A stretch of DNA of 64,000 nt. Origin: Takakia lepidozioides. Its lineage: Eukaryota > Plantae > Bryophyta. The translations under genes and the position numbers were made by a program. The stretch lies in contig CM060732.1 in NCBI GenBank assembly GCA_030704615.1, forward strand, positions 21,390,001-21,454,000, given 5' to 3'. Under the pieces are notes generated by a model that was given only the letters and a program-made list of their open reading frames with translations, was not told the DNA's origin and searched no databases. Positions 6,704-64,000 of this stretch are shown in pieces (positions within the stretch are counted from its first letter, which is position 1; the number at the start of each line of letters is the position of its first letter).

Positions 6704-6965
6704 CTCTCCTCCAGACCAGCCTCAATTCGTTTAAGATCTCTCGACTGTTCTCGATTCTTACCCATCAACTCAGTTGCTAAACCTTTCCCTCATGAGCATA
6801 GAACCCCTGTCTTACTAATAGAGCTTAGAAAACCGGTTAAGGCTGCCCCCCTCAATCACTTCTGGGTCATCTCCCTCCCCCCTCTTGACAAACGAACCAG
6901 ATTCCGCCTCATCCTATCCAGGCCATCATTTGAGACACTTCCTCTCAGCCTGCCACCCTCACAAG

Positions 6966-13721: not shown

Positions 13722-14555
13722 TCAGGACTCATTCTCTGCGTCGATGGAGGTCGCTTTGTCCAGAATGTGTGGATCGTCTCGGTCTCCTCCTTGTCCATGG
13801 GTCTCTCGTTCTTCACGAACACGTCGGACGATCCGATCGATGTCCCACAGGACGCTATCCTCGCATGCGTCTATGGCGAATTCTAGACTATTGTCGGAAT
13901 ATGTTTCGGCAATATACGCTTTCTTTTCGACTATGATGTCAGCTATTTGCAGCAGGTGGTCGCCGGGAGGTAGTTTCTGCAGATTCGCAGCCAACATCAG
14001 TTTCTCGCCACTAGTCATTTTCCGCTGTGACCTCTTTCGACGGCAAGACCACTTAAGTTCGGTATGGTCTTCTTTACTGTGGCCAGCCTCTAGTTTGGAA
14101 GGAGTCGGATCAGAGGTATCTGTCGATGCCAGCATCTCCTCCATCGTACGCGTCCTCTGCACGTCTGGAAGCTTGTCCTCCAATTTCTTCCACTCTTCCT
14201 CAAACAGATTTCCCACCGCCTTCGCCATCCCATACACCTCAGTATCTGGTTCATTGAACGCCTTCGCAAAAGTAAAGGTGAGGCGGACATCGTCGGCAAA
14301 TTCTGATATGGAAGAATACTGCTGTGCCTCCAGTTTTTTCTCGATCGTACCGAGATCCATGGGTCTCATGAAATCATCGAATAATTCGGTGACGCCCATG
14401 GGCTCTTCAGCATCCACAGGTTCGTTAGTGAATACATGTGCATGCTTGTGAGACATAAGTGTCCTCAACAATGCCCCACAATGCGCCTGAACATCATCAC
14501 TAGTAGCGATGCCTTTTCCTTTATCAACAAGCAGCTTCTTCCCCTCTCTCGGCAT
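13722..14555 (-). CDS. GTE/BET-family bromodomain + ET-domain protein, intronless, divergent
   Basis: CGALLRTLMSHKHAHVF..PVD...PMDLGTIEKKL...Y...EFADDVRLTF..A..FNEP..EVYGMA...FEEEW (bromodomain), then RKMTSGEKLMLAANLQKLP...LEFAIDACEDSVLWDIDRIV (ET). The listed TTG start is unlikely; first ATG is at 14555. Confidence 0.85.
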   Translation of the reverse strand: MPREGKKLLVDKGKGIATSDDVQAHCGALLRTLMSHKHAHVFTNEPVDAEEPMGVTELFDDFMRPMDLGTIEKKLEAQQYSSISEFADDVRLTFTFAKAFNEPDTEVYGMAKAVGNLFEEEWKKLEDKLPDVQRTRTMEEMLASTDTSDPTPSKLEAGHSKEDHTELKWSCRRKRSQRKMTSGEKLMLAANLQKLPPGDHLLQIADIIVEKKAYIAETYSDNSLEFAIDACEDSVLWDIDRIVRRVREERETHGQGGDRDDPHILDKATSIDAENES

Positions 14556-15005
14556 CTCTGAACTATGTAAACTGCTCACATTTTTAATCCCAGGCTTTAA
14601 TACTGCGTCATATCCAGTCGATCCCAGTTCCAAGAGAAAATCCCGACTGCTTCAGCATCTCATAATCTATATAAGTTCTTGTTGGGTTCTTCTCCCCACA
14701 ATCATCCACACTGATGCTCTTCCGACACTCCCTCTCAAAGTGGATCTGAATCCATTCTCTCACGGTCTCTCGAAAATTCCTTTCCTCTGCTGAAGGGCGA
14801 TCGGAAGGGCCGTCGTGCCTAGTCAGCGCAAGCAGACTCGGCGAAGAGATTTGAACATTACATAATATATATAATTACTATTAAATAGTTATTGGTTATT
14901 AAATTGCAAGTTACCGTTTGTAACATATTTAAACTCAAACTTAACGGAAAATGATAATTGGTTATTGCAAATAATAGATGGAAAAAGAAAAAGAAAAAGG
15001 GCTTG

Positions 15006-15017
15006 TAGGGTTTAGGG
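15006..15017. promoter_or_regulatory. Telo-box (TAGGGTTT = AAACCCTA) in the divergent GTE / NYN-LOTUS intergenic region
   Basis: tagggtttaggg next to an AT-rich tract between two head-to-head genes. Confidence 0.4.
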
Positions 15018-15809
15018 TCTAAAGAGACCAGGATGTGCCCAGGATTTGTGAAGCTGCACAAGGAATTGGCACACGAATCATCCCGGATCTGTGAATGCTG
15101 GAGTGTTTGAGCGAGATCTTGCTCCATTCTACGGAATATTTCTGGGATATATGGTGAGCGAGAATGCGAGTAAATTGAGTAGAGAATGTTGTGGACGAGA
15201 AAACTGGTTTTCCAGTTGTGGGTGGAAGCGCGGTTTGAAGTGTATTTCAGTGATGCGGTCAGGGAGCTCGACCATTGGGGTGTTTCGAATTTATTCTAAG
15301 AAGTGGGGGTCATATCGTTGCGGGACTATACGGGTTCTCTGTGCCCAGTGTGATTGCTTCGGTCATTCACCGAGGTTGTCCATGGTGATGGTTTGGAGGG
15401 GCATTTCGTGACTGGGTCTGTAAGTATTGGATCTGATTACCAAGGCACCATTTTCCCAGAAAGTTGTATTGGTGGACGGGACGCTTCAAGTTTGGAAGGT
15501 GGTTTTTTGAGTAATGGGTGATCAGTCTCCAGGCTCTCGGATCACAATGATCCTCGCTGGATAATGAGCTGCCAATGTTGCGGCAGAGTATCTCGTTGGT
15601 TGGGTATACTCTTGCAGGAGTAACAATGGCCCTCCGGCTTCGCCCTGAAAAGGGTTCCGGGAGGTCTAGAGCTCGTGATACTGGCATATCCAGAAGAAAA
15701 CGCTACGATTGTCAACAGTACCGATTCTATCGTTGCATCGAGGTTGCCTCTTTCTGGGAGTTTCATAGCCATCAGTGAGGGAGGGGCCAATAATATCGTT
15801 GCGGGTTCA

Positions 15810-18800
15810 ATGGGACCGAGGGTGGGCAGGTTCAGAAAGACAACCACTCTCAAATCAACAAAATCATGGAAAGGATTTACAGATTTTTCTAAAGATGAGT
15901 GCCGTTCAGTTGATAGGGAGCTACACATTGTGGAAGCCTCCATTTCAGTTCAGAAATGTAGACGGACCTCCACACTTATTGAGACTGCTGCTGGGCTTGC
16001 TGAGGGTTATAATGAGAGGGGATCCTTCATAAGGCCTCCCACTGGCAACGTAGGTGACTTTGGATTACCACAGAAAAGCAGCAATTTCTTTGGATCTGCC
16101 GTCTTGGCTACGGCTATTGGGATCAAAGTTCCCCTGTTAGCGTGCAGGTCTTTGCGGCCCCAAGGTTCCATCATTGACGGACAAGTTTCGGATTGGAATT
16201 CCTCTTCCTTCTACGGATCCCTTAAAACAAGTGCCTCTGTCCAGTTCTGTTCTGTCAGCAATGCCAGAGAGGAGAAGAGTAAGGAGCCTCCACATTTGTA
16301 TGGGGCTGGCTGGGAACATGGTCCAGGAGAGGTGCAAATTTCGGTTTGGTGGGATTTTGAGAACTGCAATGTTCCAGTGGGCATTGATGCACATAAAGTG
16401 GGTTACAATATAGTGGCTGGATTGCGAATTAGTGGCTTCAAGGGTCCTGTTTCCATAGCCGGATATGGTGATACTCTACAGCTGTCGCGGAATGTACAAG
16501 AATCTCTTACTTCCACTGGCATCCGCCTCTGCCATGTTCCTTCTGGTGAGTATTGTTGTTCTCCACATTGCTCTCTCTCCCTCTCTTTTTTCCCTCTGCA
16601 TGTGTCGGGTGGGCCTTTTGGGCCTCCCTGGACGGAATAAATTTCTTTCCTTCTTCTCTCCCTTGTTTCAGTATTTTTCAACTGTGATGCGCCGCTGTCC
16701 CATAACCTGTTTGGGCTTTTCATGGACTCAATAAAGCTCCTTTCTTTCTTTTGTCTCTTCCACCTGTCTGCTCTATCCAGGCATGCGACAAGCTATGACA
16801 AGCAGTGAGTCTCCCTCGCTCATCTGTCTTGTTGTGTGTTGTTCTCCTTTGTCCCATGGGCTCTCCGATTCCGCTTAGACATCATTAAGTTTCGTTATAT
16901 TCTGTGTGTTTCGTTGAAAAGAAAGACCGCGCTTTATTTGCCAGAAGAGGCCCCAAAGAAACAGTAGGGAGCTGAAGGCTCCCACTTTATATTTTGTTAT
17001 TATGGAGTTCAACATTGGAATAGAGCTGCAAGGGCCATTTATTGGTAATTTGGCCAGTCTACCTATTTAAGGTATACGTTGTAATGCCTGGTTTTTGTTT
17101 CCTGTGTGTTTTTGTTTCCTTGAACTCAGTTTGCCCTTGTTCAACATTCTACACCCTTGCCGGTAGGCTTTCTTGTGCTTGGACTTCAATGGAAAGTGGC
17201 ATCTGTCCTGACTTTGCACAAAGTCATCCTTTTATTTATATCTTCTCCCATGCAGGTGACCAGTAAGCATTGCCAGTCTTTCTTTTACCCTCTGGCCCCT
17301 CTCCCCTGCTTCCCTCAGATGAGATGGATTTGTGTACGACAGGTGGGAAAGATGCGACTGACAGGGCCCTAATGGTGGATCTCATATTGTGGACATTCGA
17401 ACATCCCCCGCCAGCGCACTTATTTTTAATATCCGGTGACCGAGATTTTTCAGATGCAATCCACAGGCTGCGGATGAAAAATTACAACATATTGCTGGCC
17501 TGTCCTTCAGGGACCACTGTGTCTCCAGCACTTCTTGGAGCTGCCTCTTGTGTGTGGCGATGGAACAGTCTTGTGAGAGGGGAAGGCTGGCTGGGTGTTT
17601 CTTCTTTGGATTCAAAGCCTCCAGATGCAACACCACCTAGAAACAACGTTGGGCCAAGTATACCTCCTCCCTCTACCCCTCCACCTCCACCAATGCCATC
17701 ACCTTCACCTCAAGAACGCTCTCCGTCTGGGATGCAATCAAAGTGTACTGAAGGGAACTCATCAGAGGTGGGCGAAGAAATTACAGGGGGAGGTTTATAC
17801 AAGGGTGTTGTGCGACCTGTACCCAAGTCGGTTTTGCAGAAGCTTGGAACTTTGTTTGACTCGCACCCCGATGGTATCTTGCTGCATGATCTTCGCAGTC
17901 ACCTAATCAAACAGGGCATCAGATTTGAGAGGGACTTCTATGGGTATGGTCAAATTGTTCCCCTTCTGCTTGCCATCCCGGAGGTGGTGAGAGTGGAGCC
18001 GTGTCCTGTGAAGGATAAAAATTCTTGGACTTATTTGCTCACTGCCACACACAAACGGACCCAATCAACACCTAAAAGTCAAGTGCCTGTCCCTGCTCCT
18101 TCAGACAATGTTTGTGAGAGTCCAATTGCATCCACTGTTCTTGCAGCTCCCAATGTATCCACTGCAGGAAAGCCTCCGCTTGCAGCTATGCAGTCAACAC
18201 CTGATCAGAAGATTCCCTCATCTTTGCCTACCCAATTTCCACAAGCTGTGCCTCCTAAGAAAAAAAAAAGCCCGCCACAAAAGCTTGAGTCACCCCAGTC
18301 TGTTAAGGGGTCTTCACCACAATCTCTGCTGCCCATGAAGCAGCCTGCAACTTCATTAGAAGAGGAACAAGTGCCAGTGCCTTCTCCAGCTTTGGTACCT
18401 CCTTCCATAATCAAGTCTGCTAAAGATAATCATAGGGTCGCAGACCTCCCTGTAGCTAACGACATACAGGAATTGTCTCCTCCCAAATCTGTGGAGTACC
18501 AACAAAATATTGACCCACCTCCCACGAAATCCAGTCCTCAGGACCAGGCAGATTCGAAGGCACCACCATGTCTATCAGCAGACCATTTGCCTCCCACACA
18601 TCCTTTGGCAGAGAAACCATCGCACTCAGTGCCAGAGACTATGGATGGTGTCAGGCAAGCACACCAGCTGCCCTCCTTCATGACTTACTTGATTCAAGCA
18701 GTCAAGAGCTGGGTGAACTCAAGGGCAGTCTCTGTCGACAGAGGTAGAGATCTATTTCTGTGCATTGTACTGGTTGCTTTCTATTAGAAGCATAAAGGCT

Positions 18801-21800
18801 AGTGGATAAGCATTTCCAGGTGTTAGTGGACACCAATTCAAGTGGTCATACTCTGGAATGCTGGCATTGACCATTCAATTCGATTTGCAACCACAGCAAC
18901 TCAACAGTCTCCTGGGTTTGTTCCATAATAATTGCCAGATTTTGGACTTCCTCTAAACATTCTTGCAGAAAGGTGATTGACAACTCATGTAAAGAGTGCA
19001 TCAAGGACACTGAACTCTGGTTTGTGGTTGGGCAACACTGCTTTGCAGGAAAGGAAATATTGTCTTACAATTTTGTGTTTGTATGGCAACGAATGCAGAT
19101 CAACTGAGCAAAAGGGAAAGTGGAGATGAGAGTCATGCAGAAGAGGTAACCCAAATTGAAGGAACTTCTTTTGGCACGGGACATTCCTCTACTAGTGGTA
19201 TTGGGACCCCAGATAAGGGTGACATTGGTGAGATTAAGGAAGGGGAGGCTACTGGTCGTGAAAAAACTAATTCTGTGGCCACAGTTAGAGAGGATACAGC
19301 CCCTGTTGCAGATGAAGGAAATGGACATAGGTTCATCAAAGGGGAACAAGAAACCATGACTTCCCCAACAGAACGACCCGCGGAAAAGTTTGGGAATTCA
19401 GCTGGTACAGTGGAATCTGGGGATGAGGCTGACAAGGTGAATTTTCCAGGAAAGAGCGGAGATCCTCCCACAAAGCAGGAGCAGCTGCATCCAACTGCTG
19501 GTGGAGTCCCTTGGAAAGAGCTACAATGTGGGTCAAGGGAAAGTAATACAGTAGTGTCTCTTCATCATCCCTCTGGAAAGGAATGTCCAGATGTCCAGGT
19601 CAGTGATCCACTTGGGAACCAGGATGGCGCTCTCTCTGAACCTTCTAAGCGGACCTGGAAAGAAATTTTCTTTGGGCCTGAAGAGACTGTTTCCTTGCCC
19701 ACTTTATCACCCAACAAGGACCTCAAGGATACTGGATCAGAGAGTGATGGACCTAAGGCGCAAAAGAAGTTGGAGTCCTCACATGTCCGCAGATGGATTT
19801 GGAAAGATCTCGTGTCCTGGTCCCAAAAGAGTGAGGCACTTCCCTCTGTGGATTTGTGTGCCAAGAATGATCCAGCAGGAATGGCTCTCAGATTTCCAGG
19901 AGAGCCGGAACAGGAAAGTATCTGTCTGAGTGGAGTCACTGGGAAGAAGAGCTCTCTTGCACTAAACGTGAGTATTGTTAAATCACAATGCATCGTATCT
20001 CAGATGCAACTTCCATCGATGACCTTTCAAACCAAAGAAGAAAGTGAGAAGGAGTTAAGTGCACCACCATCTTTGGCTGACCCTGAGAGTGGACCTCTTC
20101 CTGCCTCCAAAAGTGAAGGGACAAAGAAATCCGAGGTTTCTATGGGGGATGTGACTCCAGGTCCTACGTCAAACTTACCTGAAGACCAGAGACCTCTTTC
20201 ATCAAGTTTGACCCTACCAGAATTTTTACCAGCGATTATGCCTCCTACACCTCCTTCATGGGCAAGTACTTTGATAGAGCAGGGCTATCCCAGCTTTGAA
20301 AAGTTCCGAGAGTGGCTTGCAGGTAACATTGCTTTTGAGTCTTGCCACCAAATGTTTCTAGCTCCTGAGAGACTAGGTTGACAATGTTATCTATTCATAA
20401 ACTACACTATGCATACACAAACATGATGAGCTGAACTCCTTTCAAAGGCCCACTGTCAGAATCAGCACAAAAAAGTACTAACTAGAGTGGGAAATGTGGC
20501 CAGACCAATTTTGGAGGATAAGTGTTGGCAAGAGAACAAACTCATACTTCTCTGGCTGCCAGTAGAATGGAAAATTGAGGACAGGAGTTCTTAAGCAAAT
20601 CTAAACACTACTACCATCACCCACCAGCTCCAGATAACACATGTTTAAACACATGTATACACCGAATACTTCTGCGCTTTCACTGTCTATGAATGTCAAA
20701 AACATGTTTTTAATTCATTGCAGCTGTTGGCTTCATGTGACATTGACCATCTGCAGAATTTGTGGAGCAATACTTTGCAAACAACCCACGCATACAAATG
20801 CGTGGTCTCGACGTCTCTGAAGTGAAACCTGCGTTTGAGATAAAGTTTGGCATGAAGCTGGATCCCCAGGTCTATGGTTTCCGGAAAGTGAAGGAGCTGG
20901 TATTAACCATCCCCGACATTGTTGAAGTAGTGTGCCCCAGACATGACCAGTGCATGCTGTTTCCAGTTAGATCCCCTCGATCCATATCCCAGCCTGGCCA
21001 AAGCTCAGAGACTAAAGATGTGATGACAATGAAAATCTTGACCCAGCCACCCCGTCGGGAGTTGATTCGTGATTGTGAGCATCTCTTGCGAGAGCTTTTG
21101 TTGGAGCATCCTGATGGATATCCAGCAGTTAAGTTCAAGCCTGCATTTTTCAACCGATTCTCTTACCATTTGGATCATCGCAGTGAAGGATTTTCAAAAC
21201 TCTCTGACCTTTTGCGTCTGATGCCAGATATTGTCACAATTAGGCAGAGTGATTGTTTGGCAGCCCAGGTGCTTGTAGCTAGTGAAAATCCCCACTCAAC
21301 TTCAGTCTCACTGACAATAGCTACTCCTGGACCTTCACAGATATTGGGGACCACAGATTGTCCCCCTGCAGCTTTTGATCATGCAGGAGAAAGCCTTAAT
21401 GAATCACAAGGAGCCCAAAAACCATTGGCAGATGAAGGGGTTGGGCATATCAGAAGGGGTGAAGAGAAATCTCAAACACAAGTAGGAATGAAATCCCTTT
21501 CCTACTCTGAGTCCTTGAAAAGTGGAGATGAAGGTGAGCGAGCCACCTCACAACCTGGCAGGAAGGAAAAGCTGGGACCATCATTTGGTCAAGAGAATAG
21601 CTTGAGTGAGAGTGAGTTGTTGGCATTGGAAGCTTCTCACATTGCTGCTATGCCTAGTAGAGATGGTGAATATGGTGATAGCAGGAAGGCCGGGCATGGA
21701 GAAACTTCAGGACTTTGTGAGAGCTCTCCCTACAAAGGGACTGGGGAAAGCCTTATTTCTGCTGATGTTGAACTCTCATCCCAGGCTGTGAGTGAAGGCA

Positions 21801-23147
21801 GCCCCTCAAAATTGGCTGAACCCTATTTATCACAAATAACTGTTTATAGTCCAGAAATCAATCCCTATATGGATAGCACAGCATCTCATGTGACACAGGT
21901 GAAAGCTGGCCAAGGCAAGGGAGGGCAAGCTGGGGTTGGTGTACATGAACAAGGGACTTCTGGAAATCATGAGTCCTCTGTGTGGGATCTTGCAACATCT
22001 TTGATTGATGCTCAGAGGAGCTCACCTCCCACAGCAGGAGCTGACGTGCAGGAGATTGCTTTTCCACATAATGATCTGAGTCCTTTAAGCCTCCCCGTGT
22101 CTAGTAGGGAGCAGGCAGAAGTGCATATCTGCAATGCAAATGAGGACAATAGTCGAGCACAAGAGGACATTTTGGATTTGACAGAAATGGATCTTGCTCC
22201 TACGACAGAGCTTTCTGCAGGTGAATATCTCACCAACTTGCTACAAAAGGAGATGTTGGGAGAAGTGATTTTCCAGTTTTCTTCCCTGTCCTTTATTAGG
22301 ATATTTCAGAGCATATTCAAGCTAGCATTTGAGATAAGTGTGATCTTGTGCAGCAGACCTCAAAACAGATACGGAAGCAAATTTCGGTGGGACTGAAAGG
22401 GACGCCCAGAACAGAGAGCTCTTAAGTTCTTCAGCACCTTCCGAGGTCAATGCAGAGGGTGATAAACTTTGCCATGAAGCCCATTTTAGTCCAGGAAAAT
22501 TGAACGCTGAGAAAGGTGAACTCCTTGTATCTGGTGCCAACCTTCAACTTGATGGGAAAAACGAAGATGTGAACCCAATATCTTATGAACCAGTCCACAG
22601 GTTCTCAGACGAAAATTGCAGGAGAGAGTCAGCCGACGAAATAGATAAAAGAGATGGACGTCTGAGTACGATGGATGGAGACAAAAGCGAATTGTTGGGT
22701 TTGGAGCCCTTACAGAGACATAATATTTGCAGCTCGGAGGAGCAAAACTTGATTTCTTTGAAGGTAGAACACAGACTTGATGCTGTTGATGTAGAGGACC
22801 CAAGCTATCTGACCAATCACTCACTTCAGAGACCTGAGGGACCTACGGCCCCTGTAGTTCCAAATGAGAGGGAAGAAAGTCCATTATGTGAGATATCTCA
22901 ACCCTGTGGTCATGTGGTTGACAATAGAGGTGAGAGTGCTTTAGACAGTGGATCAAATGACATTCTCCAATCCTCCAATCCTGCAGTGGAGAAGGAACAG
23001 TCTCGGGGGTTGGATCAGGATAGTTTCTCTCCCACTTGTGCAGAAGGTCATGAAGATTTGAGCATCGAGAACTGCAAAGAGGCTCCAACGACTCCAAAGC
23101 CTGGTAAGAAGGGTCTCTGGCAAAGGTTGTTCAAACAAGGCCTCTAA
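15810..23147 (+). CDS. NYN-domain + three LOTUS/OST-HTH domain protein (MARF1/limkain-b1-like), about 1870 aa
   Basis: Exons 15810-16545, 17343-18743, 19099-20322, 20757-22220, 22354-23147; all introns are phase-1 GT-AG and the frame is consistent. NYN motifs VWWDFENC, GYGD, GGKDATDRALMVD, LISGDRDFS. LOTUS-like segments at about 17820-18000, 20290-20930 and 21050-21240. Start codon uncertain. Confidence 0.88.
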
Positions 23148-27342: not shown

Positions 27343-28425
27343 ATGCGACCCAGCGGTGAATGTCATGTGCCGCGCGGAGTAGGCAACGTCGTGGCCAAGT
27401 CAAGCTTCATTCCGTTGCATAGAAGACACATAGAGATGCAGGTAGGGTACAGTGTGCGATTGTTTGGATCCGGCAATTGTCGTCAGCCCCCACATCCATC
27501 ATCACAATGTAAGGAGATGGAAAGAACGAAGACCATTTCTGAGCGTGCCACTGGCCGTATTGGAATCGATCAACAGCAGCTTCGACCAAAGATCGTGTCC
27601 GGCTTTAAGGGGCATTCCGGACGCAGAGCTAGCAGCATCGTGCACCTCTGCGCTGCCCTGTCAAGAAGCTCCGAATCAGCCAGGGAAGAGTTACGGGATG
27701 GGAGGATGTCAGAAAAGACTAGCGAACTCCCAACTGGAGAAACTGACAGCGTGAGTGCTGTGGATGGCAAGATTGCAGGCATGATCTATCCACCATTAAC
27801 AACGGTCGGGAAATCCACAAACATACTATGGCAAGAATGTATGGTGAAGAGGGCAGACAGGCAGAAGATGTTGGGGCAAAAAGGCTGTGTGGTCTGGATC
27901 ACCGGTCTAAGTGGCTCCGGAAAGAGCACACTGGCCTGCACTTTGGAGCATGTACTTTTGCAGCAAGGGAGGATGAGCTATGTGTTGGATGGTGACAATG
28001 TGCGGCATGGCCTGAATAAGAATTTGGGTTTTAGTGCAGAAGATCGCACCGAAAACATTCGTCGAGTAGGGGAGGTTGCAAAGCTATTCGCGGATGCAGG
28101 AATTATTTGTATAGCTAGCTTTATCTCTCCTTACCAAAAGGATCGGGATGCATGTCGGAAATTGTTACTTCCTGGAGAGTTCATTGAGGTGTACATGAAT
28201 GTGCCGTTGACTGTGTGTGAATTGAGGGATCGCAAAGGATTGTACAAGCTTGCCAGGGCTGGCAAAATCAAGGGCTTCACTGGCATTGATGATCCGTATG
28301 AGGAGCCCCAGCATTCTGAGATTGTGATGCAAGCGGTAGGTGGTGTGTATGCATCACCCCAGGAGATGGCTGCACAGGTCCTTGCCTACCTCAAAGACAA
28401 AGGCCTTATACAACCCGAAAACTAA
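27343..28425 (+). CDS. APK: Adenylyl-sulfate (APS) kinase with N-terminal transit-peptide-like extension; intronless CDS
   Basis: STNILWQ, GCVVWITGLSGSGKSTLA (P-loop), LDGDNVRHGLNKNLGFSAEDR, FISPY, KGLYKLARAGKIKGFTGIDDPYE. The real start may be a downstream ATG such as 27436. Confidence 0.95.
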   Translation: MRPSGECHVPRGVGNVVAKSSFIPLHRRHIEMQVGYSVRLFGSGNCRQPPHPSSQCKEMERTKTISERATGRIGIDQQQLRPKIVSGFKGHSGRRASSIVHLCAALSRSSESAREELRDGRMSEKTSELPTGETDSVSAVDGKIAGMIYPPLTTVGKSTNILWQECMVKRADRQKMLGQKGCVVWITGLSGSGKSTLACTLEHVLLQQGRMSYVLDGDNVRHGLNKNLGFSAEDRTENIRRVGEVAKLFADAGIICIASFISPYQKDRDACRKLLLPGEFIEVYMNVPLTVCELRDRKGLYKLARAGKIKGFTGIDDPYEEPQHSEIVMQAVGGVYASPQEMAAQVLAYLKDKGLIQPEN

Positions 28426-33542: not shown

Positions 33543-34124
33543 CACTACTTCCCCGAGAGAGAGAGAGAGAGAGAGAAACCTTATGACGTCCCCGGGAAGC
33601 TCAAGAGATTTTCGAACAGCTTATCGGACAAAGAAAAGACAGTACAGAACGACAGGGCCCCTGGAACAACCAGCCAACAGAACCACAAAACTGCAATTCA
33701 ACCGAGAGAGAGAGGGAGAGAGAATCATCGCAGGATGCGGGTGATTCCAACTTTGAAGCTAAGAACAGAGAAGAGAGAGAGAGAGAGAAAAAAGCAAGAG
33801 AGAAGGAGGCGAACTGAAGAGAGCACTGATGCTCGCATGGTGATATGCCAACCGAAAACATTAGCTGATCAGAATGTCGTCAGAGTAACAACACTTTGTT
33901 AACGAGATATGGTTCCCCTTACCCTTATAGAGAAACCATTACTTACGGTATTCTATTACTAAAGGAGAATAGTAACGGAATCCTGTCACAGGAAAATGAG
34001 TAGAAAAAAGGGAGAGACGACCGAAGGAGTCAGAGAGAGAGGAACAGAAAGCGGAGCAGAGCAGGAAGTAGCAGGGCACGGTGGTGGAGGGAAGTCTGGA
34101 GCTGCAGCTGGGAGGGAGAGAGCC
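33543..34124. promoter_or_regulatory. Putative bidirectional promoter/5' UTR region of AGT2 and MPC with GA repeats
   Basis: Only 582 bp lie between the divergent ATGs; (GA)n tracts at about 33555, 33703 and 33773. Confidence 0.6.
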
Positions 34125-54050: not shown

Positions 54051-56858
54051 CATACTCCAATTGAACCACCACGCTACGCGCTGCTTTCATGTCATTTACA
54101 AACCTTTTAATGATTTGATGTACAATACGGGTCCGCAAACGCGGAAGGACTGGGTATCAAATCCCGGGTGGGGATTTGACCGCTACCTGTACGCTTTCAC
54201 GTTCGCAATGAATTTTGCTATTCCAAATTTGAGATGCGGGCTCATAATCTGAAACGTTGGCAGGGAAGGCACGGGAAGAGAAGAAGAGGGGTTGGTGGGG
54301 CGGATTGCGATGGCCTTGCCCAGTGCGACGATGAGGACTGGAGCAAATGTGATTGAAAGTTCACAGATTGGTTGGTTGTTAGGCGAGTGGCTTCATTTTC
54401 CTGGTGGGGAGAAGCGTGGAACTGCAACAACGACCGTGTTACAGAGCACCGAGTGTCATTCTAGGGCTAACGCGGACTCCGTCTCCGAAACATGTTGTCT
54501 ATTCAAATTCAGGAGTGTGATTGTTGCCCTGCACCTGAACACACTGATGTAAGACTATGATGAAACCCTGTAAGACTATGGCTGCATGTAGAGAGAGAAG
54601 GGAAAAATGTGTCCCCGTCGATCTTGTATGAGGAAAGGCTGAATCACAACCTTGCAAGCCAAGAAATTGGGCGTCTGGCAGGCGGGCGCAGCAGCAGAGC
54701 AATCAGAATCATCACGAAAGTGTGACACACAGAGTCTCTTGGGCGCTGAAGTGAAGCCGATAGATAGATCTCAGTTGCGAAATGCCAAGAAATGGGTATA
54801 CACGGGGAGAGGGGCACTGTACTACATCCCCGAGGCGCCTAGTTGGTCATCGTATACGACTGCCATCTGCGTGGTCCAGGCCAGGAAGGAGCCTGCTTGT
54901 GAGGTGTAGGGATTGCTTTGCTTTCCTATTTGTTTCACTCTCACGCAGGCACAGGGATGGCAACTGGCTCCACCACACTCCTGCGTGCGCTGATAGAAGC
55001 CACACAAAAAGCCCTGTTTTTCCCCTATGCCAAACGAGCGGGAGGCCTCACACCAGTCAACAGCCGGGCTGTGGAGCGGAAACGGGTATCCAACTTGGCA
55101 ATGCAGGGCCCTAGACCCTTGAAACTCCTGCCTATGGCGCCTCCTAATCCAGAGAAACCAAGAAAAGGTATAGACATCTACATCTTTGCAAATTTGCTTG
55201 AGTCTCTACCATGTGTGGGTTGCAAGAATCCAGTCTCCGTGGTCTCTCATACGTCACAGCAAAAATATTAGCTACTCCGTGCAAGGAATTCACTTTAAGG
55301 TTGTACACGAGTGGCATGCACACCCTTGTCCTCCTACCACAAGCTCTTTCACTAGCTGCTGAAATAATGTCTCTTATGTATGATCCATTCATTGCATGAG
55401 AGAGAGATTTACTTATTTACAATGCTCGCTTGCTTATTTATCTCTGTCAGACACCTTGATACCCTTGGTTTAAACAAATGGTTTGGGCTTTCCAGATTCC
55501 CTGTAGAGATCCCTTCACACAATCATCATCTGTGAGCTGCCCAGCAATTAGACCTCAACAGGGCCAGGGAATTAGGCTCAGCCTCGAGATTTAAAAAGTT
55601 GGTGAACAGAGGTGCAGGGACTATGTTGTTGATGGTCCTGAAGAGGGTCACCCTCTGATGAGAATACCCTGGACATTGTATCAGAAAATGGATGTCTAGG
55701 CTGCCCTCACATCGGGCAATTTCCTCCCTTGAGAAAGAGAGAGAGAGAGAGAGAATGTACTCATAAGACGTTGTTTGCCGTAGCCTTGTGGCCATTGACC
55801 CCGCGCCCAGTCTGAGCGGAAACCAAAGGGACAGAACCTACCTCTGTCAGGGGTTGACATTGGTAGTAAGACTTACCTTTATACAAAGAATTGATTCAGG
55901 TTTTCCAGATATCCTCTAGAAATCCCTTCACACAAGCATCAATCTGCTGTGTGTGATTTGCCCAAAAACTAGGCCTCAGAAGGGCCTGGGCTTTTGGCTC
56001 AGCCTCGAGACTTTCAAAGTTGGTAAACAGAGGTACAGGCACAATTCTCTTGATACATTGAAGGAGAGCTTCTCTCTGGTGAGAGAACCCCGGACAGTGA
56101 ATCAGAAAATGAATATTGTCTTCGGGTTGCCCACACAACGGGCAATTGCACTCTCCCTTTCCTCTCTGCTTCTGTTTACTGTTCAAAGGTAGGCTTCCTG
56201 CCCTGAGTTTAAATTTCAGTCTGGTGCCGAGAGTGGGTAGACCCTTGAGTATCCTCCCCCATGTCACAGACTGGAAACAGGTTCAGGGAAGTTTTCTGCC
56301 TAACTTCATTTGCATCAGACAATTTACTGGTAACAGACATGGCTTTGGACACTACAGTCTCTAAGTCAGATTTATCCAGCAAGGTCAAGACTTGCGGGTC
56401 CGGATTCAGATCCTTGAGAATCTCTTCTACTCTCTTCTGCCAGGACTTAGCCTGTTTGACAGGGCGGTCCTGTTTCCAAGATATAGAGCCGATTAACTTA
56501 GGGTATCTGGTGTTGGACATGTGTTGCAACTGACCCCACCATCTGACCTTGAATTCATCTCGTCGGGAGTTTAAGGAAGGGATGCCGAACTCACCCCGAA
56601 CAGCCACATTGGCTGTTTTGGAGCATGTTGACATGCACTCCTTAAGCACCCCCACTTGAATGGATTCTAGAGACTTAGCCTGGTTGGAGTTATCAACCCA
56701 TATAGCAGATCCGTACTCCAAGGCAGGTCTAATAACGCGGCAAAGCAAGGGTTTCTTGACCTCAGAGTTAATCCCTCTGCAGTGTAAAAATTTAGTGAGA
56801 CTCTGCACTTTGCCCTTGCCAGTTTGAACAACTTTCTGGAGAGAGAGAGAGATTGTAC

Positions 56859-59800
56859 TCATAAGACGTTGTTTGCCGTAGCCTTGTGGCCATTGACCCC
56901 GCGCCCAGTTTGAGCGGGAACAAAAGGGACAGAACCTACCTCTGTCAGGGGCTGACGTTGGTAGTAAGACTTACCTCCATATAAAGAATTAATCCGGGTT
57001 TTCCAGATATCCTCTAGAAATCCCTTCACACAAGCATCAATCTGCTGTGTGTGATTTGCCAAAAACTAGGCCTCAGGAGGGCCTGGGCTTTTGGCTCAGC
57101 CTCGAGACTTTCAAAGTTGGTAAACAGGGGTACAGGCACAATTCCCTTAATAGATTTGAAGAGAGCGTCTCTTTGGTGAGAGAACCCCGGACAGTGTATC
57201 AGAAAATGAATACTGTCTTCAGATTGCCCACACAACGGGCAATTGCACTCTCCCTTTCCTCTCTGCTTCTGTTTGCTGTTCAAAGGTAGGCTTCCTGCCC
57301 TGAGTTTAAATTTCAGTCTAGTGCCGAGAGTGGGTAGACCCTTGAGGTCATCCAAGATGTCCCCCATGTCACAGACTGGAAACAAGTTCAGGGAAGTTTT
57401 CTGCCCTAACTTCATTTTCATCAGACAATCTCATGGCAACAGACATGGCTGAGGACACTACAGCCTCTAAGTCAGATTTATCCAGCAGGGTCAAGACTTG
57501 CGGATCCAGGTCCAGGTCCTTGAGGATCTCTTCTACTCTCTTCTGCCAGGACTTAGCCTGTTTGACAGGGCGGTCCTGTTTCCAAGATATAGAGTCGATT
57601 AACTTAGGATATCTGGTGTTGGGCATATGTTGCAGCTGACCCCACCATCTGACCTTGAATTCATCTCGTCGGGAGCTTAAGGACGGAATGCCAAACTCAC
57701 CCCGAACAGCCACATTGGCTGTTTTGGAGCATGCTGACATACACTCCTTAAGCACCCCCACTTGAATGGATTCTAGAGACTTAGCCTGGTTGGAGTTATC
57801 AACCCATATAGCAGATCCGTACTCCAAGGCAGGTCTAATAACGCGACAAAGCATGGTTTTCTTAACCTCAGAGTTGACCCCTCTGCAGTGGAAAAATTTA
57901 GTGAGCCCCAGAGCTTTGCCCTTGCCAGTTTGAACAACTTTCCGGATATGTGCATCCCAATTACAATTGGAGGAGAACTCAACGCCCAGGTAAGTGTAGG
58001 AAGGGAGGACCGGGATCTCTTGGCTACCCCACTGCCACTTAAGATCACTTCCTCCCTCTCCTCTGTCGTTGAATGCTACCACTGCACATTTGCTGACATT
58101 AGCCTCTAGCCCCCAAAGATCAAAGTATCTTCGCGCAATCAATCAACTCCTGGAGATTGGTTGGAGTCTCCCCTATGCCTGCGAAGTCATCCGCAAACAT
58201 AAGGGCTGGTATGGTGGTATCACCCACCCTTAACCCAAATCCCTCACTTTCCACATCCTCGAGGAGTTGATTGATGAAAACATTGAAGAGCAGAGGGGAG
58301 AGAGTACATCCTTGAGCTACACCTTGGTCTATGTCATACAAGTTGGTGTGAGCATACAAGTTGTGGACAACTCTCCACATCTTTCCCTTGATCCCACAAG
58401 ACCAGAGGCGGAACCATAGGCCATCTCTCCACACTGTGTCATAAGCCTTTTTGACATCCAGGAAAAAGACATAAGTGGGTTTCCCTTCTTTTTTCCTTCC
58501 CTGGATAATCTGGCTTAGAGAAGATATGATCCACACAGCCCCTGTTTCGCCGAAGCCAGCTTGGCCTTCGTGGAAACAACCTCTAGACTCCAGATCAACC
58601 TCGAGACGAGTACTTATAACTCTGCAGAATGTCTTGCCAACAGCATTGAGGAGCGTGATGCCACGGTAGTTCCCCGGTTCTTCTCTGTCACCCTTCTTGT
58701 ATAGATTGACAATGACCCCCTGTCGCCAGCGAAAGGGGATCATTTCAGTCTTCCAGATAAGGTTAAAGAGGAGAACTAGGGCCCTATCATGGGATCGCCA
58801 CCGTGCTTGATAAGCTCGTTGACAATACCATCAGGTCCACCAGCTTATATCCATTTAAATGTTCAATTGCTTCCACAATCTCAGAAGAACTAATGGGAGC
58901 ATTATAAGCCATTGAAATATACTCCAGTTCATCAGGGCTGTTTTGAATCATAGGAACAGTTTTTCCAACTGTGTCCCTCCATTCAGCAGAAGACCCCTCA
59001 CTGTTAGACCTAGAAGTTGCCAAGGATACTGTAGTGAGTTTCAAGGTTTTGACAATGTCAACCGATGAAGTCACCACTGCACCTTTAGTAGTCTTCAGCG
59101 CTTGTACTTGCTGACCGTTTTTCGGCTTGTACAAACGTTGAAGGGCCAACCAGAATTTCTTGTCATTACCACCATGGTGGTTTGAGTTTATTTCACTGTA
59201 TAACTTGTCCCAGTATAATTTCTTCTGAGACCTAACAAGCTGATTGATATCTTTACGGAGCTGGTAGTACCTCGCCCACAATTCTCTGTTGGTTTCCAAA
59301 TTGCAGCACTCTTTATAGAGGGCTCGTCTCTCAGCTATCTTGAGTTTAATCTCATTAGTCCACCAATTAACTGCTCTACCGCAGACAATTAGTTTCCTCC
59401 CAATGATCTTGTCAGCCACGGAGGAAACGAAACTCTCCCAAGAGTCCACTGCTCTTTCGACTTCATTTCTTGCGTTAACAGAGCGTGACTGAAGTTCTTG
59501 GAGCGATTGGACAAAATGAGGGAGAGCCTCTTGCAAGGCCTGGACGTACTCAGCCTTGACCTCCTCATTGTGGAATTTTTCTATGCGCCACTTCCGAATC
59601 GAACGTTTCACAGATCTCTTGGTGGTGGGAAAACACCTTTTGATCTCAGTCCAAACCAGGAAGTGGTCAGAGGTACCAATATCAGTTCTGTCGATCAACA
59701 CATTGGCACACTGGGGGAACAAAATTTTGTCCATTATGATATAGTCCACAATGGAACGTTCCCCAGTTTGGGATTTCTCACGAGTCCACTGCACTTGGTC

Positions 59801-60406
59801 ACCTCTTGTCCTGTTATTCAAGGTCAAAAGCTGAAGCTCTTCTAGACAGTTAATTAACCGTCTGCCATTTAGAATTCAGCTCGTCCTCACCAAAAGGTCC
59901 AATGATATCGTCCTGATGGATCCCTTTGCCCACCCGGGCATTGAAGTCCCCCAATAGTACCACCTGACCTTTGGCAAGGAACGAAGCACAGTCCAGCTTT
60001 ACATCTTCGAAGGCCTTGTCTGCGTCAGCACTAAGGGTCCCCTCTGTGGGCATGTAAACACAACCAACAAAGAGGTCCTTTGTACTCATGCCGCCCTTCA
60101 AATTCAGTTTTAGCCAGATACTATGCTCGTACCTCAAACCCTTGTTGATAATTTCACAATTGTCAAACAAGAAATCACGGACAAAGAATCCGACCCCTTT
60201 TTGACCGCGTTTGGCAGAGGCTGCCTTGAGAGTACACATCTTACCTGCCCATTTATAACCATGACATCTCCAACCAGTTTATCCGACGTTTCCCATGTTT
60301 CTTGCCCAGCACAGATATGAATATCATTAGTCCGAAGAACTTGTCCCACTTCAAGTTGTTTCCTTTGGTTGGTCAACCCTGAGAAGTTGAAAGTGGCCAG
60401 CCGCAA
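56859..60406 (-). pseudogene. APE endonuclease, RT and C-terminal Cys/His finger of the full-length copy (frameshifted)
   Basis: LATFNFSGL, GQETW, GVGFFV, VGCVYMP, LLGDFNARVG, SIVDYII, SDHFLV, NYRGITLLN, FLDVKKAYDTV, GVAQGCTLSP, LMFADD, YTYLGV, RPALEYGSAIW, KLRAGSLPL, CPLCGQSEDSIHFLIHCP. The C-terminus resembles RTE-X; clade not tested phylogenetically. Confidence 0.88.
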
Positions 60407-60429
60407 GCCAGCCCTTTGCGTGTGAATTG

Positions 60430-61346
60430 TTTGTCGTCTAGGTAGCTTGTGATTGCCTGGACGGCCAAACCGTTCTGCAAAGGGGGGACAGTTACCCCAT
60501 GTGTAGATTTTGCTCGTCTTGTGTAAACTTTGAGAATTGGTAAACCATTCAGGGTACCAAATCTTTCAGTTACACGACGCACAGGCTCCGCACACATAGG
60601 GGCAGATGTCCGTCAGACTGCTTGGGGACAATTACCCCGTGTATAGATTTTGCTCGTCTTGTGTAGACTTTGAGGATTGGTAAACCATTTAGAGTACCAA
60701 ATCCTTCAGTTACACGACGTTCAGGCTCTGCACACTTAGGGACAGATTGTCCATCTGACGGCTTGGGGACAATTACCCCGTGTATAGAATTTGTTCGTCT
60801 TGTGTAAACCTTGAGGATTGGTCAGAGTACCAAATCCTTCAGATTCAGGACGTTCAGGTTCCGTACACTTAGGGGCATCTTGTCCTTCTGGCTGTTGGAT
60901 TCAACCTCATCCAGAGCATCAAACCGATTAGAAACTCTCAAGTTGAAGTTGTTGCCCTTGGTTGTCTTCCTAGAGCGCCCCATTGAATCACCAATGTCTA
61001 AGACCGCTCTCCAGCCAGTCAAGGGACGAACTTCTTTGAGATTGAATTGATGTGGGACTCTATTAGAAGCACTTTTGGTCATTGCAACCTTCAACGTACC
61101 CCTGTTATCAAGTCTCGAGATGGTACCATTAGCCATGAAATCCAAGCCTAAGCTAGAGCATGTAGTTTTAAAGGACACATCGTCCATCCTGGGATTCACC
61201 CCAAAAACTACACATGAAGCCCTAGATTTGGCATAAGTAACCAATTCCCAGGGATCACCCTGAGGAGTGTTGATGTTGATAGGAGCTAAATTTTTGATTG
61301 TTTTCGCAGGCCATAAGTTTAAGCACAGGAACCAACCCGAGCCCAA
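60430..61346 (-). pseudogene. ORF1 / N-terminal region of the full-length LINE (RRM-like segment, SNRFDAL motif, 47-aa repeats)
   Basis: SCVVFGVNP...GWRAVL, VSNRFDALDEVE, followed by three PILKVYTRR-containing repeats. Confidence 0.6.
60484..60880. repeat. About 141-bp tandem repeat, roughly 2.8 copies
   Basis: ggggaca(a/g)ttacccc at 60484, 60624 and 60765 (periods 140 and 141). Confidence 0.92.
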
Positions 61347-62641
61347 GTGCCGAGTATGCTAGACAGAGCATACGACTGCCCAATTTGGGCGGAGGGGCTG
61401 CCCCCAAGCGGTAGGAGTCCGCTTGTTACCATTCAGAGATCACACTCCAGGAGTTGCAGGGAATGGCCCGTGTAGGCATATTCTAAAGAGGGAAAGGCCC
61501 CAAGCTTTCCAACTAAATCCAATGCACTACCTTACCTGAAGCAAAGCGCTTCAGGTCGAAACAAACAAGGACACGAGGTCACAAGGCCGGCATTTAGTCA
61601 CAGAGACATTAATGTACTCCCGTTTCAATACGCTTCCTAGAGGACAGGAGAGAGAGATTGTACTCATAAGACGTTGTTTGCCGTAGCCTTGTGGCCATTG
61701 AGAGAGAGAGAGAGATTGTACTAGACGTTGTTTGCCGTAGCCTTGTGGCCATTGACCCCGCGCCCAGTTTGAGCGGGAACAAAAGGGACAGAACCTACCT
61801 CTGTCAGGGGCTGACGTTGGTAGTAAGACTTACCTCCATATAAAGAATTAATCCGGGTTTTCCAGATATCCTCTAGAAATCCCTTCACACAAGCATCAAT
61901 CTGCTGTGTGTGATTTGCCCAAAAACTAGGCCTCAGGAGGGCCTGGGCTTTTGGCTCAGCCGAGAGAGAGAGAGAGAGAGAGAGCTGAACATGATGGAGG
62001 GATTACAGTAAGGTTTCTCAATAAGATCGAGCACTCCCCAATAGAGGGACTGAGGCAATTGCAGACTGGCAAAGTTAACATGTTTTTGCAGTTATTGCAT
62101 GCAGGTCAAGCATTGAATGAAGAATGTCTCTGGCAGGAATTTTTCTCAGATACTTCACAGTGCTGCGACAACAGATTTGATAAGGTGAGACTATCCTAAC
62201 TTAGGATGTCGTAAATGTTTTCTAGGAGATCCTGGACTCAAGCTTGCATGATGAATGTTTCATCGTCTGGATAGATGCAGTTTCTCAAATTCATAAGAAT
62301 TTGGTCCTTTAGCACAAAAAACTCGAAGGTCCTTATTGTTACTAGCAGCTCAAAGCTGCTCCCTGTAGTTTGAAGATGGTGTATTTATAGCCTCAGTGTT
62401 GCCAGACTGGTAGAAGCTATAGGCTCTCAGCTGCCCAGTGGTCGGTTTTTTTCAGAGAAGTCCAGGATTGCCAGACTTCAGAAATAAGCAGCCAGAAGAG
62501 GTGGTTTGGATTGAGGGTTTGTCGAATCTTCCTTGGGTGAAAGCACAGTTACCTGCCATCACACGAGGTCGAGTACAATCTGGTGATGGCTCTAATTTCA
62601 ATGTACATCATGGCGGTTTACACCTAGAATACAACAGGTAC

Positions 62642-62970
62642 GGTTTTGATGAGATGATCCAAGGGTTTCAACTCATAAGGATAGAGTTGGTCAAGTTTAT
62701 TCGCAAAGTAGATCACTGCTGCAGTTTGGTAATCCCATCGATAAGTAGCCTGTCAGTACGAAGATATTTTTCTCTTAAGTAGCTAGGAGCAATGACATAT
62801 AGCATGTAGGGGGTGTAAGTTTTGCAACGAAGTAAGGTTTTGATGAGATGATGCAAGGGTTCCCTTCAGACGTGTAGACTTGGTCCAGCTTATTCTGAGT
62901 AGATGACTGCTGCAGTTTGGTGTTCCCATGGATAAGCGTGAAGATATCTTTCTTTACAGTTACTAGGAGC
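62642..62970. repeat. Diverged tandem duplication, about 194-bp period
   Basis: ggttttgatgagatgat(c/g)caagggtt at 62642 and 62836; ctgctgcagtttggt and gaagatat are repeated in register. Confidence 0.75.
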
Positions 62971-63033
62971 TTTGCCATTTAGGATGCGGGTTTCAGTGTA
63001 AATTTTGTAATGAAATGTTTAGAGTGATGTAGG

Positions 63034-64000
63034 ATGGCAGGGTTGAATCAGGCACAGTCAAGCACCTCCACCCTGGCCACTTCTTATAGAAGAGGACCGG
63101 GAGAGAGATTTAAAATGAAAGAGAGATTCAAAATGAAGCCTTCAGGCAGCTGTGAGGATATGAGAACACTATGTAAGGCAGGAGAACTGAAAGAGGCGCT
63201 GCACATTTTGAAACAAGGAGGCATTTCAGCAGACTTGGATACTTACGTTCGTCTCTTGCAAGAGTGCAGCAAGATAAAAGACATAGCAAGGGGAAAACAG
63301 TTGCACACGCACATCACCCAAAGTGGATTCAAGCCAAACACCTTTCTATTGAACGCCCTTGTTAACATGTATGCCAAGTGCGGCAGCCTGTTGGATGCCC
63401 GCCAAGTGTTTGACAATATGCATGAACGGGATGTATGTACGTGGACTATTATGATGGCAGGATATGCAAAGAATGGATATGGTAGTGAGGCTTGCCGAAT
63501 GTATGAGAAAATGGTAAGGGAAGGGGCTACACCCAACAAGGTCACCTTCATCTGCATTCTCAGGGCATGTGCCAGCCTAGGAGCCCTGAGAAAGGGCAAA
63601 GAGGTCCATGCTGACATCGTAAAAGCCGGAATTGCTCCGGACATCATTCTGGAGACTGCTCTTGCAGACATGTATGCCAAATGTGGGAGCATGAATGATG
63701 CAAATCAAGTGTTCAACAACATGGCCAAACGGGATGTGGTCACATGGAATACCATTATCATAGGATATGCTCAGCTTGGGTGTTGTAGGGAGGCTTTTGA
63801 GAAATATGAGCAGATGGCACGGGAAAGGGTGACACCTGACAAGGTCACCTTCATTTGCATTTTGAACGTGTGTGCCAGCCTGGTATCACTGGAAAAGGGC
63901 AAAGATGTTCATGTGCAGTTCAGCAAAAGTGGAATTCCATCGGATGTAGTTCTGGATAATAGCCTTATCGACATGTATTCGAAATGCGGGAGCTTAAAGG
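63034..64000 (+). CDS. PLS-class pentatricopeptide repeat protein (organellar RNA-editing factor type), 3' end outside the window
   Basis: Open frame from ATG 63034 to the window edge: LCKAGELKEAL...TYVRLLQECS...GKQLH...NALVNMYAKCGSLLDARQVFDNMHERDVCTWTIMMAGYAKNG...PNKVTFICILRAC, repeated. Absent from the ORF track because it has no stop in the window. Confidence 0.95.
   Translation, partial: MAGLNQAQSSTSTLATSYRRGPGERFKMKERFKMKPSGSCEDMRTLCKAGELKEALHILKQGGISADLDTYVRLLQECSKIKDIARGKQLHTHITQSGFKPNTFLLNALVNMYAKCGSLLDARQVFDNMHERDVCTWTIMMAGYAKNGYGSEACRMYEKMVREGATPNKVTFICILRACASLGALRKGKEVHADIVKAGIAPDIILETALADMYAKCGSMNDANQVFNNMAKRDVVTWNTIIIGYAQLGCCREAFEKYEQMARERVTPDKVTFICILNVCASLVSLEKGKDVHVQFSKSGIPSDVVLDNSLIDMYSKCGSLK

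Follow-up and report, generated by a model that had tools for sequence, protein, structure and literature searches.

A head-to-tail stack of 5′-truncated, TC-tailed LINE copies at a TC-repeat site in Takakia lepidozioides

Between positions 55398 and 61984 of the window (the whole 64-kb stretch of Takakia lepidozioides DNA analysed here), the minus strand carries five co-oriented copies of a LINE, arranged head-to-tail at one TC-repeat site. Read in the sense direction, from copy 5 to copy 1, the copies are 246, 42, 4,795, 1,084 and about 323 bp long; the 3′ terminus is common to all five, and the 5′ truncation points are all different. The upstream flank ends where position 61985 gives way to a (CT)11.5 tract (61962–61984), which forms the 5′ junction of copy 5, the topmost copy, and belongs to no recognisable copy as its tail. 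Copy 5 itself (61716–61961) is a 3′-terminal fragment, and its (TC)8 tail (61700–61715), with TC microhomology, doubles as the 5′ junction of copy 4 (61658–61699), a 3′-terminal fragment identical to copy 3. A (TC)5 tract (61648–61657) is both the tail of copy 4 and the 5′ junction of copy 3 (56853–61647), which is the longest copy and contains an N-terminal region, an APE endonuclease domain, a reverse transcriptase (RT) domain and a CCHC C-terminus. In the same manner, (TC)7 (56839–56852) links copy 3 to the 3′-terminal fragment that is copy 2 (55755–56838), and a 24-nt imperfect TC tract (55731–55754) links copy 2 to copy 1 (55408–55730), whose own (TC)5 tail (55398–55407) is followed by the downstream flank. 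All of these features are on the minus strand.

A five-copy array of this kind had been proposed in the initial annotation, and the sizes, shared orientation, shared 3′ end and varied 5′ truncation given there are borne out to the base. It had also placed a repeat tract at each of the six junctions. A (TC)n tract is indeed present at six of six, but five of these are merely the 3′ tails of the copies themselves. Since those five are obligatory copy tails, only the tract at 61962–61984 is informative on targeting, and it alone calls for some explanation beyond copy tails. Microhomology at the 5′ truncation junctions, likewise claimed beforehand, was found with TC over 2–5 nt at copies 2, 4 and 5. 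No target-site duplication is visible at the array outside the TC tracts. Elsewhere in the 64-kb window no further copies of the family were found, and none of its five other (GA)n tracts of at least five units contains one. An extension of the homology into the upstream flank at the protein level failed when tested against the C-terminus of copy 3; hence, the flank is not taken to be LINE-derived.

The element is a non-LTR (LINE) retrotransposon of the APE type, given its RT, its APE domain and the shared 3′ end with 5′ truncation. The RT domain of copy 3 (57444–58779, minus strand) matches Pfam RVT_1 at 3.2e-24, and its best solved relatives in a structure-database search are R2 proteins and L1 ORF2p, at about 1e-14 to 1e-12. 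The APE domain (59860–60436, minus strand) shows the canonical N, QET-type and GDFNAR motifs over two frames. Its Pfam match in copy 3 itself is weak (E = 0.05) because the domain is divided between these two frames; copy 3 is collinear with full-length APE and RT relatives that carry Pfam Exo_endo_phos. The RVT_1 match, the APE motifs and this collinearity together support the earlier assignment to the APE- and RT-bearing non-LTR elements. A PDB search with an APE piece returned no match. Towards the C-terminus lies a conserved domain (57017–57346, minus strand) with a C-X2-C-X8-H-X4-C motif, for which the Pfam zf-RVT match is weak and under the cut-off. Some 1.2 kb of N-terminal region precede the APE domain and include three tandem 140-bp repeats (60484–60885, minus strand), the number of which differs among genomic copies (contig joints 60529>60825 and 60499>60896). 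The reading frame of copy 3 is interrupted in the present assembly.

At the 3′ end, the stop codon of copies 2–4 is found 8 nt ahead of the (TC)n tail, while copy 5 has a different stop codon, made by a private 4-nt deletion close to it. The last 141 nt, which are coding, give a non-significant RNA fold (z = −0.46 versus shuffles), and the stable 3′-terminal RNA structure of stringent-type LINEs is accordingly not seen in this segment.

In a search of representative proteins, all relatives were at or below 58% identity, and the best matches were algal, metagenomic and arthropod proteins. For the RT, the closest relatives come from algae or protists, with 58% identity to Ectocarpus. Two pieces of the LINE found no protein homologues in a search over a length band that leaves out full-length ORF2 proteins. 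Matches in a protein atlas were to generic RT clusters only, and the 20-nt 3′-terminal word had no match in a scan of metagenome contigs. The 3′ ends of the relatives vary: one (L001) ends in G runs, another (L003) has no clear 3′ tail, and downstream of the Ectocarpus relative there is only a telomere-like hexamer repeat. As in RTE elements, the 3′ UTR of the Takakia element is very short and ends in a simple repeat (cf. PMC2887409); of the RTE-X-like label in the initial annotation, this is the one trait seen. As for the single endonuclease and RT ORF of that clade, the frame of copy 3 is interrupted, and the element also contains the N-terminal region of about 1.2 kb and the CCHC motif. Apart from the LINE, we noted an APS-kinase ORF with 70% identity to Ceratodon, from which the host looks like a moss; the land-plant host assumed in the initial annotation is thus supported.

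The copies fall into three divergence classes. Copies 3, 4 and 5 are substitution-free among themselves, copy 5 differing from copy 3 in the multiple alignment by zero substitutions, one 1-nt indel and one 4-nt indel. Copy 2 is 7% diverged from copy 3 (K2P 0.071) and has several bases unlike nearly all genomic contigs aligned over it. Copy 1 stands at a K2P of about 0.37 from the other copies; its last ~40 nt are unalignable with their 3′ ends, although it still ends in (TC)n. Given this unalignable 3′ end, copy 1 belongs to a different, related lineage, so that the greater divergence already reported for it stands but reflects more than age. Two lineages with unlike 3′ termini are thus both TC-tailed. 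With a trio 3–5 free of substitutions, a copy 2 at 7% divergence and a copy 1 of another lineage, the array is judged, from sequence comparison, to hold at least three independent insertion events at one site, differing in age or lineage, and the repeated insertion over time that had been suggested for it is thereby supported. Copies 3–5 and the top (CT)n could have come from a single event with template switches. The older copies are downstream in the array and the younger ones adjoin the upstream (CT)11.5 tract; this age order rests on three classes, and about one in six random build-ups would give the same order.

The genome-wide signal was read from short contigs of other runs aligned to the 64-kb stretch. 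In one run (X1), 48,230 contigs align to it, of which 19,757 reach an identity of at least 99%, and contig depth drops from the 3′ end of the element toward its 5′ end. The family is very abundant and was probably active recently. Among the joints listed, other head-to-tail arrangements occur with truncation points at 57405, 57425, 57675, 57774 and 59311, each passing directly into (GA)n and the 3′ end of another copy. Such joints elsewhere in the genome speak for the interpretation given in the initial annotation. Among the ends listed, one 5′-truncated copy (point 58197) is preceded at a distance of 6 nt by (TC)8. At the 3′ end of some genomic copies there are one to three TC units or no TC at all, and the flank beyond is (TA)n, (CA)n or a run of T. 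Repeats on both sides are thus present in the array; the small part of the joints and ends listed includes several further head-to-tail joints and one 5′ junction beside (TC)8, but also copies with non-TC 3′ flanks.

The explanation that we favour, and to which we would give about an even chance, is that the array is a stack of 5′-truncated copies of an abundant APE-type LINE, for which priming of target-primed reverse transcription (TPRT) is favoured at (TC)n through pairing with the tail. Given that five copies are stacked at one TC site, the family probably prefers TC repeats, its own tails included; this preference is suggested by one array and a partial set of contig joints. The transcript would have nearly no 3′ UTR and would carry (UC)n at its end. 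Integration would proceed by TPRT, and we infer that priming would be favoured by base pairing between the (UC)n tail and a nicked bottom strand with (GA)n at its end. As a consequence of this (UC)n–(GA)n pairing, (TC)n that already exists, whether as a tract or as the tail of a copy in place, would be a preferred but non-obligatory landing site; that pairing is not required follows from the copies with few or no TC units and non-TC flanks. Every integration would leave TC repeats on either side, and because these repeats remain, the site would stay attractive and copies would pile up head-to-tail. The order of events that we infer for this locus would begin with copy 1, from a diverged lineage, followed by copy 2, from a subfamily that is older or less common, and then by the trio 3–5, perhaps in a single event during which the template was switched to further (UC)n tails. 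Pairing of a simple-repeat tail with the target has been proposed for LINEs of the RTE clade (PMC6007223), in which SSR tails are found on a near-absent 3′ UTR (PMC2887409).

In line with the sequence-specific retrotransposon of the initial annotation, the specificity might instead reside in the endonuclease, with the APE domain recognising and nicking (TC)n.(GA)n duplexes and the tail following from the target. We consider this rather unlikely. It would accommodate the (CT)11.5 tract upstream, which no recognisable copy supplies as a tail, the position of old copies downstream and young ones beside that tract, as if one microsatellite had been hit repeatedly, and the TC association in two diverged lineages; moreover, microsatellite-specific APE LINEs do exist (PMC3812793). 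However, five of the six tracts are only tails, some genomic copies have non-TC 3′ flanks, nearby (GA)n tracts in the window are empty, and the APE pieces are without informative match to solved specific endonucleases. Template switching would take the place of targeting: an RT that reaches the RNA 5′ end, or stalls at an internal UCUC-like site, would re-prime on the (UC)n tail of another transcript, so that a single integration gives rise to more than one copy, arranged head-to-tail, and even to a (CT)n on top that consists of tail alone. End-to-end jumping by non-LTR RTs is known in vitro, reportedly from the R2 work of Bibillo and Eickbush. The zero substitutions among copies 3, 4 and 5, the TC microhomologies at the starts of copies 4 and 5, and the position of copy 3, the full-length member, as the most 3′ of the trio, where it is expected if synthesis began there, are all consistent with this mechanism. 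Nevertheless, copy 2, with its 7% divergence and private changes, and copy 1, of another lineage, cannot share the trio's event, so one site must still have been hit more than once, independently. Template switching accounts for part of the array but not for its location. We consider it unlikely.

It is also conceivable, though improbable, that (GA)n.(TC)n forms non-B DNA that often breaks or is nicked, and that retroelements use the free ends without any specificity of their own. The apparently canonical APE domain of this LINE argues against such capture, as does a TC tail that is always in phase with the tract, although pairing alone would also account for the latter. Finally, the array might be a product of DNA-level rearrangement or artefact, be it tandem duplication, unequal crossing-over between TC tracts or mis-assembly at a microsatellite. 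None of the short contigs aligned spans the array, and copy 3 of the assembly seems to differ by small indels from contigs of three other samples, which otherwise match it free of substitutions. Against this, nested sets that stop at a single 3′ terminus are characteristic of 5′-truncated retrotransposition, and similar joints recur in the genome. Units of five different lengths that end at the same 3′ terminus and fall into three divergence classes are unlike the products of tandem duplication, which is rejected on these grounds, and we regard this whole group of explanations as very improbable.

In a limited literature search, no report of a microsatellite-associated LINE in land plants was found. 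This is consistent with the earlier statement that no such land-plant system is characterised, without proving it. If the preference for TC held genome-wide, the element would be, per the literature searched, the first microsatellite-associated LINE from a land plant. Some of the GA/TC microsatellites in this genome, together with their repeated flanks, would then be accounted for, which is relevant to marker design and repeat annotation. Since its tail is the same as its target, the element could serve to separate endonuclease specificity from tail–target pairing in TPRT. A self-regenerating "safe" landing site would offer a LINE a route to very high copy number, and tail-guided choice of sites is of interest, as a distant prospect, for site-directed insertion tools. 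A bolder reading, in which the LINE represents a land-plant lineage, closest to algal elements, with true specificity for (TC)n, and adds copies in polar chronological order at one edge of a persistent microsatellite, seems doubtful to us. Were it true, every stack would document past bursts in their order, and much of the making and filling of GA/TC repeats in this genome would be due to the family.

LINEs landing in TC-type repeats are known from fish and insects. The microsatellite-specific APE LINEs comprise Kibi (Tx1 group), Koshi, Waldo, Mino and Dong; of these, Kibi elements are (TC)n-specific in zebrafish and pufferfish, and recognition of the microsatellite target by the APE has been proposed for Kibi and Koshi in fish (PMC3812793). 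Like Kibi, the Takakia element is an APE-type LINE that lies within TC dinucleotide repeats and is bordered by them at either end. Unlike Kibi, it has a land plant as host, its RT is nearest to algal or protist sequences (58% to Ectocarpus) with no tie to Tx1 established from the matches, and its own tail is the same repeat as the target; compared with Kibi, moreover, its specificity is a preference that one array and partial contig joints point to.

In Marchantia, "LINE/RTE-X" elements have been annotated around the centromeres (bioRxiv 10.1101/827881); in Chlorella, the class is annotated within them (PMC11005252). With the RTE-clade LINEs that have SSR tails, the Takakia element shares an APE and RT, plentiful 3′ partial copies and a tail repeat thought to sway the choice of nick site or the priming (PMC2887409, PMC6007223). 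In published RTE elements, the SSR is created between ordinary target-site duplications (PMC2887409, PMC6007223), whereas the Takakia copies stack at the repeat with no ordinary duplication visible. The CCHC C-terminal motif and the N-terminal region of ~1.2 kb are further differences from these LINEs.

Like Zepp, the Takakia element is a LINE of the green lineage that builds clusters of nested copies; unlike Zepp, which is poly(A)-tailed, it is TC-tailed and, per the contig evidence, spread in very many copies. The clade annotated for Zepp and the Zepp-like LINEs of green algae is L1 (PMC11005252). Each chromosome has a single Zepp cluster, located at a presumed centromere or at a telomere (PMC3446292, PMC11005252). 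In Penelope-like elements, a bias towards insertion into microsatellites masks target duplications, and multicopy head-to-tail insertions occur (PMC8557442). The Takakia array resembles these in consisting of head-to-tail copies at a microsatellite; however, Penelope-like elements have a GIY-YIG endonuclease or none, together with a telomerase-like RT, while the Takakia LINE has an APE and an RT of the LINE type.

Between positions 55,398 and 61,984, five copies of one group of non-LTR retrotransposon (LINE) are arranged head to tail, every one on the minus strand; tracts are given here in the sense of the element, in which (TC)n corresponds to (GA)n on the forward strand. In this sense the upstream flank leads into a (CT)11.5 tract (61984-61962), followed by copy 5 (61961-61716, 246 bp) with (TC)8, copy 4 (61699-61658, 42 bp) with (TC)5, copy 3 (61647-56853, 4,795 bp) with (TC)7, copy 2 (56838-55755, 1,084 bp) with a 24-nt imperfect TC tract, and copy 1 (55730-55408, about 323 bp) with (TC)5 and the downstream flank. 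When the boundaries were re-measured, the coordinates, sizes, orientation and junction tracts of the initial annotation all proved correct. The terminal 44 nt of the element occur three times at ≤3 mismatches and not once in shuffled sequence; copy 5 is a fourth copy with the same terminus, within which it carries a 4-nt deletion. Beyond these five, no further copy of the family was found in the 64-kb window. The flank upstream of the array also holds two diverged tandem duplications (62638-63014 and 63365-63993), with periods of about 190 and 300 bp and about 71-73% identity.

Copy 3, the longest, encodes a LINE-type reverse transcriptase (RT; Pfam RVT_1, 3e-24), to which R2 proteins and human L1 ORF2p come closest among solved structures. 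It is collinear over almost its full length with three full-length relatives that run from an APE endonuclease to the RT (P0006, P0010 and P0012), and its own APE motifs are directly readable at 60436-59860 (-), spread over two frames. A conserved domain with a C-X2-C-X8-H-X4-C motif lies 3′ of the RT, and the stop codon stands just 8 nt ahead of the TC tail, so that there is practically no 3′ UTR. Among 1.8 billion representative proteins, the closest RT relatives are two Ectocarpus proteins (58% and 55% identity) and metagenome proteins, with no land-plant protein among them. At the DNA locus of an Ectocarpus relative (L002), seven telomere-like AGGGTT units (8848-8889), about 170 bp past the annotated gene end, may be the repeat tail of that element. 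The N-terminal region of the LINE contains three tandem 140-bp repeats (60484-60885, -); contig joints at these repeats jump 295-396 nt, which suggests that their number differs between genomic copies.

A second LINE at 5516-11000 (+), with an ORF1-like ORF, APE, RT and a plant-L1-like Cys/His C-terminus, is unrelated: over the RT region it shows 22-33% identity to a set of query proteins for which the array family reaches 41-58%, and the two are therefore distinct. The window further contains a row of long single-exon ORFs with Bromodomain/BET, NYN and OST-HTH/LOTUS domains (13725-22393), which points to a gene-rich neighbourhood, and an ORF of 360 aa, free of introns, that encodes a complete APS-kinase domain (27343-28422, +). 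The latter is closest to moss proteins (70% to Ceratodon), then to those of ferns and lycophytes, and could be either a retrocopy or a genuine gene with one exon. The host is a land plant, probably from a moss-like lineage that diverged early.

The copies fall into three divergence classes. Copies 3, 4 and 5 show no substitutions in the multiple alignment over the sequence they share (246 bp for copies 3 and 5, 42 bp for copy 4), a 1-nt and a 4-nt indel being their sole differences; a pairwise alignment that places the gaps differently counts three substitutions within this trio. Copy 2 differs from copy 3 by a K2P distance of 0.071 over 1,083 bp, and at about eight listed positions nearly all genomic contigs disagree with its base in the window. 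The corresponding part of copy 3 has far fewer such positions, which suggests that copy 2 is older or derives from a less common lineage. Copy 1, with a difference of 28%, likewise ends in (TC)n, although its final ~40 nt defy alignment with the other copies; it belongs to another lineage within the same LINE group. Hence at least three independent events are needed to build the array, in keeping with the repeated insertion over time originally proposed. The copies presumed to be older occupy the 3′ part of the array, and the youngest adjoin the longest pure TC tract, although a polar old-to-young build-up is only suggestive, because with three classes about 1/6 of random build-ups would give the same order.

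In the assembly, interruptions break the reading frame of copy 3. Compared with it, contigs of three other samples show no or almost no substitutions and several length differences of 1-2 nt, many of them in short single-base runs. So strong an imbalance between indels and substitutions points to long-read assembly errors behind some of the interruptions, or at least to changes that only copy 3 has, and also to recent activity of the LINE family.

The genome-wide evidence comes from assembled contigs of public sequencing runs, none of which spans the array. From one run, 48,230 contigs were placed on the stretch (19,757 at ≥99% identity), with depth dropping from the 3′ end of the element towards the 5′ end; copies of the family are extremely numerous in the source organism. 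Among the joints listed, truncation points at 57405, 57425, 57675, 57774 and 59311 run directly into (GA)n and the 3′ end of another copy, and the joint 57425>61648 was found again in an independent run filed as plant metagenome. Thus, head-to-tail stacks recur elsewhere in the genome. At 58197, a further 5′ junction lies 6 nt downstream of a (TC)8 tract. At some 3′ ends the tail amounts to no more than three TC units, or is missing altogether, and (TA)n, (CA)n or a run of T comes next; a TC context is therefore no strict requirement. Within the window, five other (GA)n tracts lack any copy of the family. Four (GA)n tracts, none bearing the family, cluster in a GA-rich stretch at 33555-34041 that looks like the promoter or 5′-UTR of a neighbouring gene. 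In contigs of two runs (X1 and X7), the last 44 nt of the element (56853-56897) are fused to roughly the first 20 nt of the full-length 5′ end (61628-61647), which may represent a very small deletion product or a short element that is not autonomous.

The initial annotation had stressed that (GA)n sits at all six junctions. All six tracts are present, but five are uninformative, because tailed elements joined head to tail will always show a tail wherever one copy meets the next. The informative features are instead the lone (CT)11.5 tract, before which there is no recognisable copy, the absence of any ordinary target-site duplication outside the TC tracts of the array, the TC microhomology of 2-5 nt at the 5′ ends of copies 2, 4 and 5, which upholds the microhomology first reported at truncation junctions, and the coincidence of independent insertion events at a single site. 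A faint protein similarity in the upstream flank failed a direct test and lends no support to a LINE origin there.

The best-supported explanation is preferential target-primed reverse transcription (TPRT) at (TC)n.(GA)n tracts. The element RNA would have a (UC)n end, with which a nicked bottom strand ending in (GA)n would pair to prime cDNA synthesis; part of the tract would stay upstream at the 5′ junction, where the cDNA end would join via TC microhomology, and a TC landing site would thus be regenerated after each integration. For RTE-related elements, tail repeats have been proposed to act in nick-site choice or priming (PMC6007223). Endonuclease-level specificity for (TC)n may act in place of such tail pairing; the mechanism of microsatellite-specific LINEs has been called poorly understood, with the endonuclease thought to be the main player (PMC3812793). 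The array is a real and neat finding; a claim as strong as sequence specificity would be premature. Alternatively, copies 3-5 and the top (CT)n could stem from a single integration in which the RT switched template to further (UC)n tails, as would suit the lack of substitutions among these copies, although repeated hits at the array site would still be required. Tandem duplication was rejected, since unequal units with a common 3′ end do not fit it, and mis-assembly of the array is unlikely.

Searches of open-access text turned up no account of a land-plant LINE associated with microsatellites. LINEs annotated as RTE-X occur around Marchantia centromeres (bioRxiv 10.1101/827881) and in Chlorella centromeres (PMC11005252), with no mention of a microsatellite association in the parts of these reports consulted. 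Fish and insects are known to have APE LINEs that are truly microsatellite-specific, among them Kibi, which is specific for (TC)n (PMC3812793). RTE-clade LINEs have a short 3′ UTR made of simple repeats, and the near-absent 3′ UTR of the array element is a trait reported for that clade (PMC2887409). In its architecture, the array resembles Kibi-type microsatellite LINEs, RTE elements with simple-repeat tails, and the nested Zepp LINE clusters of green algae (PMC3446292).
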